DNA of 64,000 nucleotides from Asterias rubens (lineage: Eukaryota). The stretch is taken from NCBI RefSeq assembly GCF_902459465.1, contig NC_047063.1, positions 24,118,001 through 24,182,000 of the forward strand. Reading direction: 5' to 3'. The number at the start of each line of letters is the position of its first letter. The stretch's first letter is position 1. The position numbers were made by a program, and so were the translations under genes. Positions 21,963 through 30,300 of the stretch are shown here, piece by piece. The notes under the pieces were generated by a model. It did not search any database. It was not told the DNA's origin and saw only the letters and a program-made list of their open reading frames with translations.

Positions 21963-22386
21963 TTAAAGGCAGTGGACACTATTGGTAATCACTCAAAATA
22001 ATTATTTATTAGCATATACATCCTTACTTTGTAATGAGTAATGGGGAGAGGTTGATAGTATACAAAAGTAGAGTATAAAATGTGAGAAACGGCTCCCTCT
22101 AAAGTAAGGTAGTTTTAGAGTTTCCACGAATTTGATTTTGAGACCTCGGGTTTAGAATTTGACGTCTCGAAATCAAGCATCTGAAAGCATACAACTTCGT
22201 GTGACAAGGGTGTTTTTTCCTTTCATTATCTCGCAACCTCAACAATCCATTGAGCTCAAATTTTCACAGCCTGTGAAAATAACAAATCTGTGACAGGTTT
22301 TTTTTTTTTTTGCATGTTGAGATACATCAACTGTGAAGGCTAGCCTTTAACAATTACCAATACAATGTAGTTTCCACTGCCTTTAA
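21963..22386. mobile_element. TTAA-flanked non-autonomous DNA transposon, family A (Kolobok-like), full copy
   Basis: TTAA-AGGCAGTGGACACTATTGGTAA ... TTCCACTGCCT-TTAA. TTAA duplication plus AG...CT termini fits Kolobok better than piggyBac (inference). Partial copies near 60-170, 433-500, 3362-3420, 9030-9450, 26222-26400, 38680-38815 and 55420-55755. Confidence 0.8.
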
Positions 22387-22933
22387 GAGAGGTTTACTAA
22401 CCACTATACACATAGAGTCTGTCTACGCACAATCCATGCACACGTGACACACGGACCATTGATTCCACACATAAGTCTTTATCATCCAATCAGGGTTCTT
22501 CAGCCAATACACAAAACGGAAAAACTTGTTCTCTCTGTTTTCACAAAATACTAAGAAAAAATGATTGAATGCTCCTGACTGCTCTGTAGGACTTTAAAAA
22601 CCAAATACAATGTAGAAACATTCAGATGACCTTGTTCCAATTCTCAGTGTGCTTTGGGCCAATAATCCCAACATTTGAGTCCAGAATGCCCCACAGTTTT
22701 GAAAAAATCCTGATTGAGAACCTTGATACAGACTGTGTTTGTGTATCATAATATGTCAATGTAGGGTCATTTGGCAGAGTCCATGCAGTGTATTTATTGT
22801 ACTTAGGACTCGTGATAACAACCTTGTAATCACGGCTAAAGCCAGGCAGCTTCCCTTGAAATAATTGTCCTATACCATCCCTTGATAGCATTAATAATAC
22901 ATCAACAGTTCTCCATAGTTTCAATATTTGATG

Positions 22934-24222
22934 CTAGCTCTCTTCATTCGTCTTGATTTTGTCCTCTGCTGCTTTTCTTGCCTCATCTCGTGATCTTCCC
23001 AGCTCGCCTCTCTCAGGAGGAATCTCTGGTATCGTCTGCAAGAAAAAGAAACAATGTAAGAACTGAGAAAACGCTGCAGAGTAGGTGCAACTTTAACCGT
23101 GGAAATTTACTATGGCTGAATGAATTTTTTAGCTAAAATCCCGATAACAACTTGAATTTGATCATTCAAACTGAAACACATGGATATTGGGGAGCGATTC
23201 AAAATCCAAACAGTAGAATGTTCTAAAGGGATCGTTTTAATAACAGAACATTCCTACTGTTCTGCCTGCTGGAATACTTGAAACCGGGCAGACGTCTGTT
23301 GGAACATTCCATTGTTTGGCACAATGTCATGTTCCAGCAGAACATCCTTTTTGCCCGGAACTTGCCTGACTTTTTAGATTGTCCCTTCAGATAAGAGTCT
23401 TAACTTTTCTAAGAATTTTATATGAAGTACATGTATACTTCTTAGGCCTCCCCTTGAATGTAACTGATACAACTTCTATTTGGAAATTTACACTTATTTC
23501 TTGTTTTTTTTCTTCTTTTTTATGTGGTGGTGATTGTGGTGTTTTTGTTTGATGGAATTGGAAAACAAATGGACAGAACTTAAATTTTAACCTTTTTTTT
23601 TATTTTATTGTTTGTCCTGTCTTTCGAATGTTAAAGCCATTATACACTTTCGGAACAGGAAAAAACAAAAAAGTTCACAGATTTACAAATAACTTACTGG
23701 GTTTACAGAAGGTAATGGTGAAAGACTTCTCTTGAAATATTATTCCATGAAATGCTTTACTTTTTGAGAAAACATTAAAGCATATCAATTCTCGGTAGCG
23801 AGAATTACGGATTTATTTATTGAAACAAGGGTGGGTTTTCCCGTTATTTTCTCCCGACTCCAATGACCGATTGAGCCTATACTTTCACAGGTTTGTTATT
23901 TTATATAAGTTGTGATACACGAAGTGTGGGCCTTGGACAATACTGTTTACCGAAAGTGTCCAATGGCTTCAACCGTGTTGGTTTTTCTGTTGTTTTTATA
24001 TTTGTATCTCTTGCCAGTTGAACATTTTGTTGGTACTGTGTGAATGTTTTTATCTGTGTAATTAATAATAAATGAAATGAACATGAAAAACTGTGCCAGC
24101 ATCCTAGACATTACCATATCAGGCTTGTAGTAGGCATGTACAACTTGCGCTCCTGCCATCATGGACAACATGCTGGCCGTCAAGAATTTCAAATACGGAA
24201 ACAAGTCTATTCCAGCAGGCAT
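22934..24222 (-). CDS. UQCC6: Complex III assembly microprotein UQCC6/BRAWNIN (C12orf73), 2 exons, 69 aa
   Basis: Exons 24222-24115 and 23035-22934. Translation MPAGIDLFPYLKFLTASMLSMMAGAQVVHAYYKPDM|TIPEIPPERGELG... matches the BRAWNIN pattern (MPAG...AGAxVVHxYYxPDxTIPEIPP). Minus-strand AATAAA at 22793-22798. Confidence 0.93.
23631..23972. mobile_element. TTAA-flanked MITE family B in the UQCC6 intron
   Basis: TIRs AGCCATTATACACTTTCGG / CCGAAAGTGTCCAATGGCT; related to 33065-33493. Confidence 0.75.
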
Positions 24223-24466
24223 TTTCAACTCTTGATCTTTGTAGCACCCCAATTTGTCAGAAATGGACACAAATCAATTCCCTTTTCACGTCTGATGAAT
24301 GAATTTCCTTCCAAAAAGCGATGTTTCCAGACAGACAACTCTTTACATTCTTGTCAAATGAGATACATGTAAGACGCACACTGCACTAGTTTAACAAGAT
24401 GCTTCATCATCGCTCAGAATCAGGTTTTGAGTTATTCAAACAAACAGCTCATCATTGTACACTGGA

Positions 24467-24568
24467 GTCACTCCTACTAGCTTGACACACTTGACGTCTT
24501 CTCCTGATTCTCTGCTAGTCACTCCTACTAGCTTGACACACTTGACGTCTTCTCCTGATTCTCTGCTA
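24467..24568. repeat. Perfect 51-bp tandem duplication including the UQCC5 stop codon
   Basis: GTCACTCCTACTAGCTTGACACACTTGACGTCTTCTCCTGATTCTCTGCTA occurs twice. Confidence 0.95.
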
Positions 24569-25598
24569 GCGCTAGTTTGGTCGCATGGTTACGCTCAGAT
24601 TCCTTCCTACGATATACATCATCTGGAAATAAGTAACAAAGAAAATAATATACTTTTTTAAAAGGGAAAAACTTTATAAAAAAGTGTTGGCACTCATTTT
24701 TGTTTAAAGGGTTATTTATGGAGGTAGGATTTAACAAGAATCATTTTTAATAAAAAGAAAGATACACAACTAGCATGGGATGGATGGAGTTTTAACGTCT
24801 TTTCATAACCAAACCAAACTTTTTTATAGGAAAATGTTACCACAACTCACTGCCGAAAAGTAAATTTGATTAAATCGTAATTTTAAAAATTCAATCAAGA
24901 CTATTGAGTGAGTGTTTGTGACTGTTTCATGCTGCTGTTGCCAACGGTAACATTTATTAACAAGTGTATTGTTTGTTTTAAATGTAAGCTATTCTAGGCA
25001 AAAAATTTACCGGTTTAGTTATGCCAGTGCAATAACAGGAAAAGTTTCCGTATGGCGCCGTATGGCACCACTTTTTCATTCGATATGAATCTGAATCTGA
25101 ATCTGAATTATATAGTCGGCAAAGCACCCTTTCAGTTTCGGAAACGTCACACTCACACATTATAATTAATAGTATCAGATTTACCTTAATGAGATATCCT
25201 TTTTTGTAAAATTTAGTGAAAAAGGGATGGCGCCATCCGGAAAGTTATCCCAATCAATAACAAAATCAAAATTTACATTAAATAATAAAATATTACTTCA
25301 CTTTGACTCCCCTTTCATTTTGCCATAAACCACGCCCATATTATCATAACCCTTCAGCTGTATGGTACCCGTTTTCGCTGAGCACAAAAACAACATACTA
25401 CACACGGCGTAGCCAGACTGACATTGGCCAGAAACGAAACTTACAAAATGTTTCTCTGCCGGGTGCAATTCGGGCGTTGATCATCACCCATTCCAGCGAA
25501 GCCCCGAAGCCGAAAAACAGAGGCAGGAACCTGTACAACCCTAGCCTCTTCCCGGGCCACAGATTGAGGATTTGGCGAAGAGTTTTACTGTAAAACAT
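24528..25598 (-). CDS. UQCC5: Complex III assembly microprotein UQCC5/SMIM4, 2 exons, 82 aa
   Basis: Exons 25598-25445 (T|gtaagt) and 24622-24528 (ccag|AT). Translation MFYSKTLRQILNLWPGKRLGLYRFLPLFFGFGASLEWVMINARIAPGRETF|YDVYRRKESER matches SMIM4 (PGK..G.YRFLP.FF..G...EW.MI......ETFYDVYRRK.SER). Confidence 0.93.
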
Positions 25599-27301
25599 TG
25601 ATATATTGGTGAGTTATTTAAGGTTTGTTGTATTGCATTTGCAAACACACACGAAATGGTATGCGCCCTCTATTGTTATTACAATGTAAGGTTTTGTGCA
25701 TGTGTCAGAATGTGGTGCAACATAAAACAAAAACAACACAATAGTTATCTTTTGCTAACATAAGATCTTACTGATTGTTTGGTGCACTTGGTATTTTCAA
25801 CAAAGGAGGCATAAAATAAAGTGTTTTAATTTACAATTGAGTGAGTACACTAACTAAACCTCAATAATTAAATTGACTTAATAAATAAAATCATGAAAAT
25901 TGCTAATTTTGTTTTTAGTTTTAAATTTATCCAGGCGCGCGCCTTGTTATTATGTTAATGCATGTTTGTTTGTTTGTTTGTTTGTTTAGATGATCTTTCC
26001 ATCAAGGGAACTCGGTAGGGAAAGGGATATAACGAGGCTGGCAACAACCACTAAAGTAAAGTGAATTGAATTAATTGAATTGAATTGTATCTCTCTGATC
26101 TCATACAAACATTGCCGGTCTAATGTCTATGAGTATGACGATACGATACGAATTGCACATCAAGATATTGGAATACAACAACTTAACAAGTGACAATTAT
26201 TTTACCAAATGTGTCAAGTGCCTTTAAAGGCAGTGATGGACACTATTGGTAATTACTCAAAATAATTTTCCGCATTACCCCACTTGAGTAACTAATGGGG
26301 AGAGGTTGATAGAATAAAACATTGTTAGAAACGGCTCTCTCTGAAGTGACATAGTTTTCGAGATTTTAAAAAGTAGTTTTCCACGAATTTTATTTCCCGA
26401 TAGTCCTAGAATTCTTTTGAACTATGACTTTTGTTGTATGGGTTTTGTTCCAATTGACCGCCGAGCGTCTATCAAGAAGGAGACGGTAGTCAAACGAATC
26501 TCAAGCCTAGTTGTGTATTCTTCTTCCTTCCTGGGTTCGTCAACCAGAAACATACAATTCACCAAAATTCAATCAGTCTTTTTCAAATCTATTGTTTATA
26601 AATTGATACAGCCTTTGTTTAACTTTGTTTAAACATGGAGGAAGGAATGGTTTAAAGGAGAGTTGAGTTTAAAATGGGGCCTACCCCTACATGTATACAT
26701 TTATTAAGCTTGAACTTGAAGTCTGAAGAGACCCACTCCAACATTCTTTAAAAAGTCATCACTTAAAAATGTAGCTAAGTGGAATAGCCCAATCCATTAT
26801 AAGTGGGTTGGCATTCTATATACAATTTATTAAAATAGGCTATTTAAAGCTAGGCCTAGATTAGTTTCGATAACGTACGTAACCCTCCTCTACATTATCG
26901 CAACTACTAACTAGGCCTATATTTGACTACATTCTTTGGAGCAGATTAGTTTTGTTTGTATGGGGGAAAAGTATAAATCAATACCCTGCAACTTGGTTAT
27001 AGCAAATAAGCATGACACGGACGCTCATCAATACACCCACGGATGTTCACACCCACTGCTATGGCTACGCACCAGACAGAGACTAGAGTTGCAGGGTCCA
27101 CTGACATCAAGTCATTGACATGTATTTCGTATTTCCCACTGTTGTGCAATAATGAGACTGTTGTGTAAGTTCTCAGCTCCAGGTGAAGTACATTACATTA
27201 TTACTTGATCTTAAAGTGACGGTGTGGTCGATAACATTTTCAGAGTAACAAACTTTGAAGGAGCTGAGGAAGAGTCAAGAGTGACGTGATAACAGAATAA
27301 G

Positions 27302-30300
27302 ATGGCAGGCGTACGGACGTACACCCAGGAGTTGGAGTATCTTCATCAGCTTTCCCCAAACATATGGCAGATCAAGAAAGGATTTGTTCCAAACATGAAG
27401 GTTAGTTTAATTACTAAACTGTGAATTATTCTACTGGAAAATAATCAAAGAAATTCGTTAATATTGTGAGTACTGTTTATTAAGATTCTGAAAAGGTGTT
27501 CAAAATTTAACCCTCGTACCATAAACCGTGTTTCTCAAGACAATCCATCTATAGAGTGGAGCCATACCCAAAAGGCTTCAATGAGACTGAACGAGACCAA
27601 TTTAAGTGGTGGACAATAAATCGAAGGGCGAGCGGTTAAACACAATTATTCATGTTTAATTATGGGGCCATCATTGCTGAAGTGCAAGCTTCAGACATGA
27701 TGCCAGGTCTCTGTGCAGTGGGGCCATGCAATAAGATGAATGGGGATTTTGACTGTGTTCTTTCTTTGTGACATTTACTTTGGACGATATGCACTGTGGG
27801 CAGTGTAGATTGCTTACCAGAGTGCTGGGCGAAAATATTGTTGAATTCTGGGCAGGCCTGCCCAGTGTTACCCACCGTGGCTACGACCCTTGTCATTTGG
27901 ATTTGGTGATCAAGATCTGTGGCACCAATCGACCAACCTTACAACTTTACAGTATAAAATATCAGGAACAATACTAGTACAGAGTATTAGATGAAGAACT
28001 TTTAATAAAGAAATTGCAAATTCAATGGCTGGAAAGTGTGTCATGTCTTACTTCACCATTATGTGCATTTAGCACTGCACCCCATAAGGATTTTAAGACA
28101 TCTTGAAGTATGCCCTATATCCATATGTGGGAGAGATTAGTGAAATAAATGCTATTTAGTGTGCGAGTTCCAGATGCATAAAAATGTTGAGGTACATGTA
28201 TAGTTCTTGATTCTTTAATTTCCAGGTTGAGGGAAGATTTTATGTCAACAGTAACTTGGAGAAGCTGATGTTTGAAGAGCTGAGGAACTCTTGTGCCAAC
28301 AAAGGTACATTATTTAATAATACTCGGTTTTTATATAGCGCTTTATAATATGTTATTTTTAAAATAATACTTGGTTCTTTATAGCTCTTTATAATATGTT
28401 ATTTAATAATACTTGGTTCTTTATAGCGCTTTATAATATGTTATTTAATAATACTTGGTTCTTTATAGCGCTTTATAATATGTTATTTAATAATACTTGG
28501 TTCTTATATAGCACTTTATAACATCCCTATAAGGGGCGTATCCAAGCGCACAGTATTTTTACCTGTAAGGTTTATGGAGCTACGATTTGAAGTATGAGAC
28601 CTATTCCTTTAAAGCACTCATTGGTTTACAAGCTTGGGCTGTGGCCCAACATGCAGCCAATTAAAACAGGAACAATAACAATAATAATAACAGTATTTAT
28701 AAAGCGCCAAATTGCCAAAGGATACAAGGTGCTGAGAAGGAAAGAAGAGGGAAAAAAAGCGGAACAAAGATAAAGACGACCAGCTACGAAGAGGCAAAAA
28801 GGTGGGTTTTAGAGCACGTTTGAAGGCTGTGACACTGTTTGAGCTTCTGGTAAGGGTAGGTAGAGAATTCCATAGTCGGGGAGCAGCAATTGAAAATGCC
28901 CTATCACCTGCAAGTTTATGGGTTTTGTGAACTGAAAGGGATTTACCAGTAGTAGAGCGAAGAGAGTACGAAGATGTCTGGAGTGAAAGGAGAGAGGAGA
29001 GATAATCCAGGGCATAGTGATTGAGGGATTTATATGTGTGGACCATTTTACGGAATTGAATGCGTTGGGCAACTGGAAGCCAGTGTAATTGCTTGAGAAG
29101 TGGAGATGAGTGAGTGAATTTGGGCAGCTTAAAGATAAGTCTGGCACAGCGGTTTTGGAGCCGTTAAAGGCGGGAAACATCTTTCTGTGAAACACCATTC
29201 AGGAGGCAGCAGCCATAGTCCAGCTTGGACAGAATTAAGGCACGAACAGCATTATGGCAGGCGCTGAAATCAAGAAACCTCCTGATACGGCTTAGGTTGC
29301 GTATATGCCAGTTAAGAGAGCGACAGAGCTGAGTAATGTAAGCAGACATGGACATGTTGCGATCAAAAACAACACCTAAGTTTCTGACAGATGGAGAAGG
29401 ATGAATTTGAGTGCCATTTAGATTAAAGGTGAGGTGATCCAGATTTTTGAGGTGAGTGGAAGAGGCTGCAACGAAGAATTCCGTCTTATCCGGGTTCATC
29501 TTGAGCTTATTGGTGACCAACCAGGATTGATTGAACACCAGGGTGAACCCCCTTTACTTTTTGGTAAGTGCACTTGGTTCTTTTAAAGGCGTTACACAAC
29601 ACACGGGACCCAACGGCTTTATGTCCCATCTGAAAGGCGAAGCAATAGTAAAGTGTCTTGCTTAAGAACACAAGTGTCACGACTGGGACTCGAACCCACA
29701 CTCAGCTCTGAAAAGAAACACCAGAGTTTGAATTCGGTGCTCTTCACCGCTCGGCAGCGACACTTCCCTTTAAAAACACATTTTGGCGAAATATGATGTA
29801 CAAACTAAATGACTTATACAAGAGAGGTTTGCAGTAACACCATGTGAATATCTTTTTTTTATTTTATCCATTGTCCCTGTAGCCATGGGTGGTTTTTTAC
29901 CAGGAGTAAAGCAGATCGCCAACGTTGCAGCCCTACCGGGTATAGTTGGCTACTCAGTGGGCCTACCGGACCTCCATTCTGGCTATGGATTTGCAATAGG
30001 TAAGTGAATACGTACATCTCCAAATAACCCACTGCACCCACAGCTATTGCCGCGGTGCCCTGTGCTTTTGCTGAGGTGCCCTGTGCAAGAGTCCAATACA
30101 AACTTACTGTGTCCCTACAAGTAAATTGCTGATCAAGGGGGAAGTTCAAGGCCTGTGACTGCATGCAAACCTTGCAGTGGTTGGGACTTATTTGGTTGCA
30201 ATGCTATGTTCCTCCAGAAGGAGCCCATTCTCACAATGTTTTATACTCCTTTGTTGGCTAACAAGTAGGTTTTTATGCTATTAATTCTTTCTTTTTTAGT

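Follow-up and report, generated by a model that had tools for sequence, protein, structure and literature searches.

Here we describe two tandem genes for complex III assembly microproteins, UQCC5 (SMIM4) and UQCC6 (BRAWNIN), on the minus strand of a 64,000-nucleotide (nt) stretch of the Asterias rubens genome (assembly GCF_902459465.1, contig NC_047063.1, positions 24,118,001 to 24,182,000 of the forward strand), which is referred to as the window and in whose numbering all positions are given. The locus probably represents the ancestral linked UQCC5-UQCC6 pair, of the type known as sloth1-sloth2 in Drosophila, expressed as one bicistronic three-exon mRNA in an invertebrate deuterostome. Co-transcription of the two genes is well supported at the level of short-read assembly by colinear spliced contigs, including a 908-nt contig from a close relative that spans both genes. 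Because these contigs are short-read k-mer assemblies, we can only infer that single RNA molecules carry both open reading frames (ORFs), as had been proposed from the DNA letters alone in an earlier, sequence-only reading of the window; UQCC6 would be translated from such a bicistronic RNA.

The linkage of this pair beyond Drosophila, which the sequence-only reading implied to be new, was already published in 2022, down to the same exon and spacer plan in lamprey (PMC9681215). What this study adds is modest: a further lineage, RNA support for co-transcription from two species, a contrast between linkage and translational geometry, and an antisense overlap of the unit with the neighbour gene RTCB.

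Gene structure and family assignment

The two genes are direct neighbours on one strand, UQCC5 being the upstream one. All coordinates that had been given for the two tandem ORFs and for the 305 nt that separate them were reproduced. The unit is composed of the following features.

25598-25445 and 24622-24528, minus strand: UQCC5/SMIM4 ORF, 82 amino acids, ATG at 25598, stop TAG at 24530-24528
24222-24115 and 23035-22934, minus strand: UQCC6/BRAWNIN/C12orf73 ORF, 69 amino acids, ATG at 24222, stop TAG at 22936-22934
25445-25608, minus strand: first exon of the unit, with UQCC5 coding exon 1 preceded by 10 nt or more of 5' untranslated region (UTR)
24623-25444, minus strand: UQCC5 intron, 822 nt, GT..AG, phase 1, after ..ETF
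24115-24622, minus strand: middle exon, 508 nt, with UQCC5 exon 2 (24622-24528), the spacer (24527-24223) and UQCC6 coding exon 1 (24222-24115)
24223-24527, minus strand: inter-ORF spacer, 305 nt, exonic
23036-24114, minus strand: UQCC6 intron, GT..AG, phase 0, after ..KPDM, donor GTAATG
22934-23035, minus strand: UQCC6 coding exon 2, ending in the stop TAG 22936-22934

UQCC5 coding exon 1 comprises 51 codons plus 1 base and is followed by a GTAAGT donor at 25444; the phase-1 position of the intron agrees with the published lamprey and fly sequences. Both family assignments are well above the curated Pfam cut-off, which is 27 bits for either profile. The UQCC5 protein matches PF15114 (UPF0640) with an E-value of 2.7e-27 and 94.9 bits (residues 3-67 on profile positions 2-65 of 67), and the UQCC6 protein matches PF14990 (DUF4516) with an E-value of 1e-21 and 76.7 bits (residues 1-44 on profile positions 1-44 of 46). 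A word-index homology search returned no match for UQCC6 and only the unspliced exon-1 ORF for UQCC5, and an exact protein look-up of UQCC6 found no record. By hydropathy each protein has one hydrophobic stretch, the top 17-residue window of UQCC5 scoring 1.61 at residues 24-40. In fly and human, the orthologues of both proteins cross the mitochondrial inner membrane once and serve as assembly factors for respiratory complex III (PMC9681215, PMC8719881), and by analogy with them the UQCC5 product would be expected to reside in the mitochondrial inner membrane and to act in complex III (cytochrome b) assembly. A tandemly repeated 452-residue protein, P0003, also matched UQCC5 residues 8-48, in seven stretches with 32% identity; this match is possibly spurious.

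RNA evidence for a probable single transcription unit

The RNA data are public sequencing runs in the form of Logan k-mer contigs (k=31), two from the window's species (organism A, runs X1 and X2) and two from a close relative (organism B, runs X3 and X5). Such contigs are short-read, strand-blind and carry a flat mean depth, and the kind of run was only guessed ('RNA?'). At this locus they are spliced at both GT..AG introns and have zero depth in unique intron sequence, and therefore derive from RNA. The join 23035/24115, by which the UQCC6 intron is removed, and contig pieces ending exactly at 25445 and 25608 are present in all four runs, while the depth is zero over 23076-23463 within the UQCC6 intron and about zero over 24628-25015 within the UQCC5 intron. 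RNA depth at 25016-25403 was considered as an alternative exon in the UQCC5 intron and rejected, this segment being a dispersed repeat with copies at about 51.9 and 52.9 kb of the window.

Spliced contigs of four runs from two species follow the genome colinearly through the spacer, where their depth matches that of the exons. An X1 contig piece follows the genome over 24115-24495 with one mismatch and no gaps, so the spacer is exonic and without an intron; X1 also contains 0.90 of the words of the middle exon (24115-24622), compared with 0.33 for the whole 3-kb locus, the latter value being close to the exon fraction. A spacer intron is thus excluded for the main isoform, and with it the cryptic intron that the sequence-only reading had suggested as one way to reach the UQCC6 start. 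The longest connection is seen in organism B, where the 908-nt record 23 of X5 joins 22758-23035, 24115-24473, about 95 nt and 25445-25608. The approximately 95 nt fit UQCC5 exon 2 with one unit of a 51-nt sequence that is duplicated in the window, and neither two copies of this unit nor the unspliced 822-nt intron.

24466-24516 and 24517-24567, no strand assigned: perfect 51-nt tandem duplication, spanning the last 12 codons of UQCC5, the stop and 12 nt beyond

The UQCC5 stop in use lies in the first copy, and the second copy is a recent one that forms 51 of the 305 bases of the spacer. The duplication leaves the UQCC5 protein unaltered, lengthens the spacer and breaks k-mer assemblies. In organism B the unit is apparently single-copy, since 95 nt were seen where one copy predicts 98 and two copies 149. 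The organism A contigs in X1 stop at 24495, which equals 24465+30, that is, k-1 bases into the duplication. This stop is an assembly break, because a 51-nt tandem repeat forces any k=31 graph to branch at its entry, and its position indicates that the duplication is present in organism A RNA. Contig ends at 24469-24495 were also considered as transcript ends in the spacer, and for X1 this was rejected on the same ground.

Spacer, start codons and proposed translation of UQCC6

As the sequence-only reading had noted, the spacer lacks AATAAA and ATTAAA; 12 further variant hexamers are absent as well, and none of these signals occurs in 24622-24223 (UQCC5 exon 2 plus spacer). The spacer has neither a GTRAG donor nor a good acceptor when scanned for splice sites, folds with no excess stability relative to shuffled sequences (z = +1.0), and shares no conserved block with that of the relative L002 (GCA_013332995.1). 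The short ORFs that its six ATGs open have lengths of 7/6, 18/17, 4 and 1 codons. Between the UQCC6 ATG and the stop of any short ORF opened upstream of it, including these, there are 120 nt or more. No ATG occurs in the final 125 nt of the spacer, against 3.0 expected (P=0.014, for a region chosen post hoc).

Comparison of organisms A and B shows that the coding sequences and the spacer evolve at different rates. UQCC5 exon 1 has 0 differences in 164 nt, and the UQCC6 coding sequence shows only synonymous changes among the three differences listed, though the sample is small. The spacer has about 22 differences in 251 nt, or about 9%, as compared with 0-2% in coding sequence, and is the fastest diverging of the transcribed parts. 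To judge from these substitutions, both ORFs are under purifying selection and the spacer is unconstrained.

The start codons differ in strength as had been claimed: the UQCC5 context is weak (atcaATGt, with T at -3 and T at +4) and the UQCC6 context is strong (gaaaATGc, with A at -3). The order weak-then-strong holds for this locus and is not shared by the relative L002, a mite (L001) or a wasp (L004); in L002 the UQCC5 start has A at -3. Between the two starts lie ten further AUGs, four out of frame within UQCC5 and six in the spacer, in addition to one internal in-frame AUG. One of the four has a strong context (ggaATGg) and opens the 16-codon ORF already pointed out in the sequence-only reading, which had also seen several spacer AUGs and had concluded that pure leaky scanning is complicated. 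We agree: because of these ten AUGs the geometry for pure leaky scanning is absent, and simple leaky scanning appears unlikely as the route to UQCC6. From the arrangement of AUGs and stops, we favour a combination of leaky scanning and reinitiation, possibly together with an internal start site.

In the model that we consider probable, a single promoter, shared head-to-head with RTCB, would drive the whole unit; the resulting mRNA, 1.4 kb or longer, would have three exons (25608-25445, 24622-24115, and 23035 to 22314 or beyond), with the UQCC5 ORF in exons 1 and 2, the UQCC6 ORF in exons 2 and 3, and the 305-nt spacer retained as exonic sequence. At the weak UQCC5 AUG, part of the ribosomes would scan past, while those finishing UQCC5 or one of the short out-of-frame ORFs would resume scanning. 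Competence for reinitiation would be regained over the final AUG-free 120-125 nt, so that the UQCC6 AUG, with its A at -3, could be used. To judge from the fly and human orthologues, both products would be complex III assembly factors, and one RNA would therefore couple their supply.

A more specific variant, which we put forward tentatively and regard as rather unlikely, is that long-spacer, intron-bearing loci such as those of Asterias rubens and L002 make UQCC6 by delayed reinitiation of the GCN4 kind, after an ATG-free last 120-165 nt. Ribosomes done with UQCC5 or with a short out-of-frame ORF would skip the early spacer AUGs. If this were true, the ratio of UQCC5 to UQCC6 would respond to the availability of eIF2, i.e., to cellular or mitochondrial stress, and the coupling would differ both from the leaky scanning of the fly and from the overlapping stop and start codons of the mite.

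Alternative explanations

Several observations weigh against production of both proteins from one bicistronic mRNA. Twelve AUGs precede the UQCC6 AUG in the mature RNA, and the six ATGs of the spacer compare with 7.9 expected from shuffles, which means no overall depletion; the spacers of the wasp and, as judged by eye, of lamprey, sea squirt and choanoflagellate are free of ATGs. UQCC5, with 82 codons, is long for efficient reinitiation. Contigs with UQCC6 and the spacer are two to three times deeper than UQCC5 contigs in two runs (59 versus 18.9 in X2, 32 versus 14 in X3), which could reflect extra UQCC6-only RNA or 3' bias. Finally, k-mer contigs may fuse two overlapping RNAs, so that a two-gene contig does not prove one transcript.

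An internal start site for UQCC6 is a serious rival to bicistronic translation, though not exclusive of it. It is possible, if doubtful, that UQCC6 comes mainly from a shorter mRNA of its own, transcribed from an internal promoter in the spacer, most plausibly with the ATG-free last 125 nt as its 5' UTR. With no poly(A) signal in the spacer, UQCC5 transcripts would still extend across UQCC6, and the bicistronic RNA would exist as UQCC5 read-through and not as a working template for UQCC6. The excess depth in X2 and X3 agrees with such an mRNA, as do the lack of constraint on the spacer, its ATG-free end, and the six spacer AUGs and four out-of-frame AUGs in UQCC5, which would strongly impede scanning. 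However, depth is a weak argument, given the flat mean depth of the contigs and the frequency of 3' bias, and the two kinds of contig are equally deep, or a single contig spans everything, in X1 and X5. A conserved promoter-like block was not found in the comparison with L002, and among the contig records listed none ends, or has a loose end, near the UQCC6 ATG.

That the locus produces two separate, overlapping mRNAs, a UQCC5 RNA ending in the spacer and a UQCC6 RNA starting upstream of that end, with the spanning contig being a merge of the two, is improbable. The assembler is strand-blind and demonstrably merged the RTCB and UQCC5 RNAs at this same locus, so a merge as such is conceivable. 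But none of the 14 kinds of poly(A) hexamer is available in UQCC5 exon 2 or the spacer to end the first RNA, the depth is even across the spacer with 0.90 of the middle-exon words present in X1, and single transcripts carry both ORFs in the fly, in the sea squirt (XM_018812254.2) and in a choanoflagellate contig. Least credible of all is a cryptic intron or alternative splice that removes the spacer or UQCC5 exon 2 and so brings the UQCC6 AUG near the cap, or else a structure in the spacer resembling an internal ribosome entry site, for which the difficulty of scanning past 12 AUGs is the only point in favour, whereas the contigs are colinear through the spacer in four runs, splice signals and excess folding are missing from it, and it diverges fastest, with no conserved block.

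Antisense overlap with RTCB at the 5' end

The gene RTCB lies head-to-head with the UQCC5-UQCC6 unit, on the plus strand, and its main non-coding first exon is spliced across 1.6 kb to the exon that contains its ATG; further exons of RTCB lie beyond, from 30382 onward on that strand.

25578-25608, plus strand: 3' end of the RTCB non-coding first exon, donor TTG/GTGAGT at 25608/25609, overlapping UQCC5 exon 1 by at least 30 nt
27244-27403, plus strand: RTCB exon with its ATG, encoding the RTCB N-terminus and ending in a GT donor, acceptor ttttcag/AG at 27243/27244

In the assemblies, contigs join UQCC5 exon 1 (25445-25608) to 27246-27403 and continue into RTCB mRNA (records of 1747-2354 nt). 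The same contigs thus hold the minus-strand splice 24622/25445 and the plus-strand splice 25608/27244. Splices of opposite strands in one contig mean that two antisense RNAs, overlapping by at least k-1 bases, were merged by the strand-blind assembler, and that a non-coding first exon of RTCB ends at 25608, in antisense overlap with UQCC5 exon 1 and with the UQCC5 start codon. This merging of RTCB and UQCC5 RNAs occurred in all four runs. We considered 27244-27403 as an upstream 5' exon of UQCC5 and rejected it, since the splice sites of the join read GT..AG in plus-strand orientation and 27244-27403 codes for the N-terminus of RTCB. RTCB RNA also shows a proximal 5' end, which is weaker, at 26883-27272 (record 6 of X1, depth 5). 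Upstream of 25608 the depth is low (0.9-10.9), and the 5' UTR of UQCC5 is therefore probably short.

3' end and dispersed repeats

The 3' part of the unit extends beyond the first canonical polyadenylation signal.

22314-22933, minus strand: 3' UTR, at least 620 nt, running into a very high-copy dispersed repeat

The AATAAA at 22798-22793, the first after UQCC6, is present where the sequence-only reading had placed it, but it is not the transcript end: it is read through, with even depth across 22494-23075, and RNA contigs go on to about 22314. Downstream, contigs end at 22314-22375, where the high-copy repeat starts; a second AATAAA lies at 22010.

Very high-copy dispersed repeats were observed at 23630-23970 (in the UQCC6 intron), at 26180-26373 and at about 22300-22380; in every run their RNA-contig depths sum to between 1e5 and 1e6. 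The window has related copies elsewhere, near 33.0-33.5 kb, 35.0 kb and 49.4-49.8 kb. These repeats are probably elements resembling short interspersed nuclear elements or miniature inverted-repeat transposable elements that are expressed from many loci.

Distribution of the linked pair in other genomes

An exhaustive search with UQCC5 exon 1 yielded 145 relatives, and some of their loci were fetched for comparison; one contig (L003) ends 63 nt after UQCC5 and another (L005) is too short. The same gene order and linkage, for which the sequence-only reading had proposed to look, were found in L002, in the velvet mite Dinothrombium tinctorium and in the wasp Orussus abietinus. L002 has the same four-exon plan, with 60-67% identity, and a 223-nt spacer without AATAAA; two ATGs are present in this spacer as compared with 6.5 expected (P=0.009).

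In the mite (L001) and the wasp (L004), the genes keep the order and strand seen in Asterias rubens, plainly form a single unit, and differ in being intronless. The mite ORFs overlap by their stop and start codons in TAATG, a geometry of termination-reinitiation, and the wasp ORFs are separated by a 97-nt spacer without ATG; neither locus has an out-of-frame ATG between the two starts. An annotated 138-residue mite protein, P0139, at positions 5001-5455 of L001 (NCKU01000040.1), carries both PF15114 and PF14990. This apparent UQCC5-UQCC6 fusion was rejected as a gene-model artefact produced by a 38-nt predicted intron, the DNA holding two ORFs that overlap at TAATG. At two vertebrate loci (L006 and L007, the latter adjoining a PBRM1-like gene), no UQCC6 was found within 6 kb.

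Comparison with known systems

The present locus adds an ambulacrarian-type deuterostome to the lineages that keep both complex III microproteins on one unit, and strengthens the published view of an ancestral linkage that jawed vertebrates alone have lost. It also bears on annotation: such pairs are easily mis-modelled, as in the mite 'fusion', and strand-blind assemblies merge the pair with the antisense 5' exon of RTCB.

In Drosophila, sloth1 and sloth2 (CG32736-CG42308) are the same pair in the same order on one transcript, as the sequence-only reading had stated, and leaky scanning between them was tested with reporters and shown by Bosch et al. (2022, eLife; PMC9681215). The fly and Asterias rubens loci share the gene families, order and strand, RNA across both genes, a weak AUG followed by a strong one, and an equivalent UQCC5 intron. 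They differ in the spacer, which is 5 nt in the fly and 305 nt with six AUGs in Asterias rubens, where four out-of-frame AUGs also lie inside UQCC5; in addition, UQCC6 has an intron in Asterias rubens, unlike fly sloth2. The human genes, SMIM4 (UQCC5) on chromosome 3 and C12orf73 (UQCC6/BRAWNIN) on chromosome 12, encode orthologous complex III assembly factors but are unlinked, also in agreement with the sequence-only reading.

A 'similar bicistronic gene architecture' was reported in choanoflagellate, sea squirt and lamprey, the genes being unlinked only in jawed vertebrates (PMC9681215). The SMIM4/C12orf73-homolog locus of the lamprey Petromyzon marinus (Supplementary file 1 of PMC9681215) has an exon and spacer plan identical to that of Asterias rubens: UQCC5 is split into two exons by a phase-1 intron that follows ..ETF, about 200 nt of spacer come next, and UQCC6 is likewise split into two exons, by an intron that follows ..PDL. 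By eye from the printed sequence, the lamprey spacer is GC-rich and without ATG, in contrast to the six ATGs in Asterias rubens, and for this pair the authors allow one transcript or two adjacent ones (PMC9681215). In Ciona intestinalis (XM_018812254.2) and in a transcriptome contig of Salpingoeca urceolata, both ORFs are on one RNA, annotated or assembled, as we propose here; the spacers are about 330 and 84 nt, respectively, with no ATG seen by eye in either (PMC9681215 supplement).

The Ciona mRNA holds a third long ORF 3' of the sloth2 homolog, which is not discussed in PMC9681215. From this ORF, the Ciona pair may belong to a three-cistron unit. Ciona operons are resolved by spliced-leader trans-splicing. 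In the Asterias rubens locus, by contrast, neither a third cistron nor a leader sequence was seen. Nor does this locus look like a spliced-leader operon of the nematode or tunicate type, which has a poly(A) signal behind the first cistron and a trans-splice acceptor with leader at the second: its spacer has no poly(A) hexamer, its contigs are colinear, and no foreign leader was found 5' of UQCC6 among the records listed.

Taken across these systems, linkage is conserved and translational geometry is not: the two ORFs are separated by 5 nt in the fly, overlap at TAATG in the mite, flank ATG-free spacers in several lineages, and lie on either side of an AUG-rich 305-nt spacer in Asterias rubens, a locus which is for this reason a useful natural test of second-cistron translation in animals.

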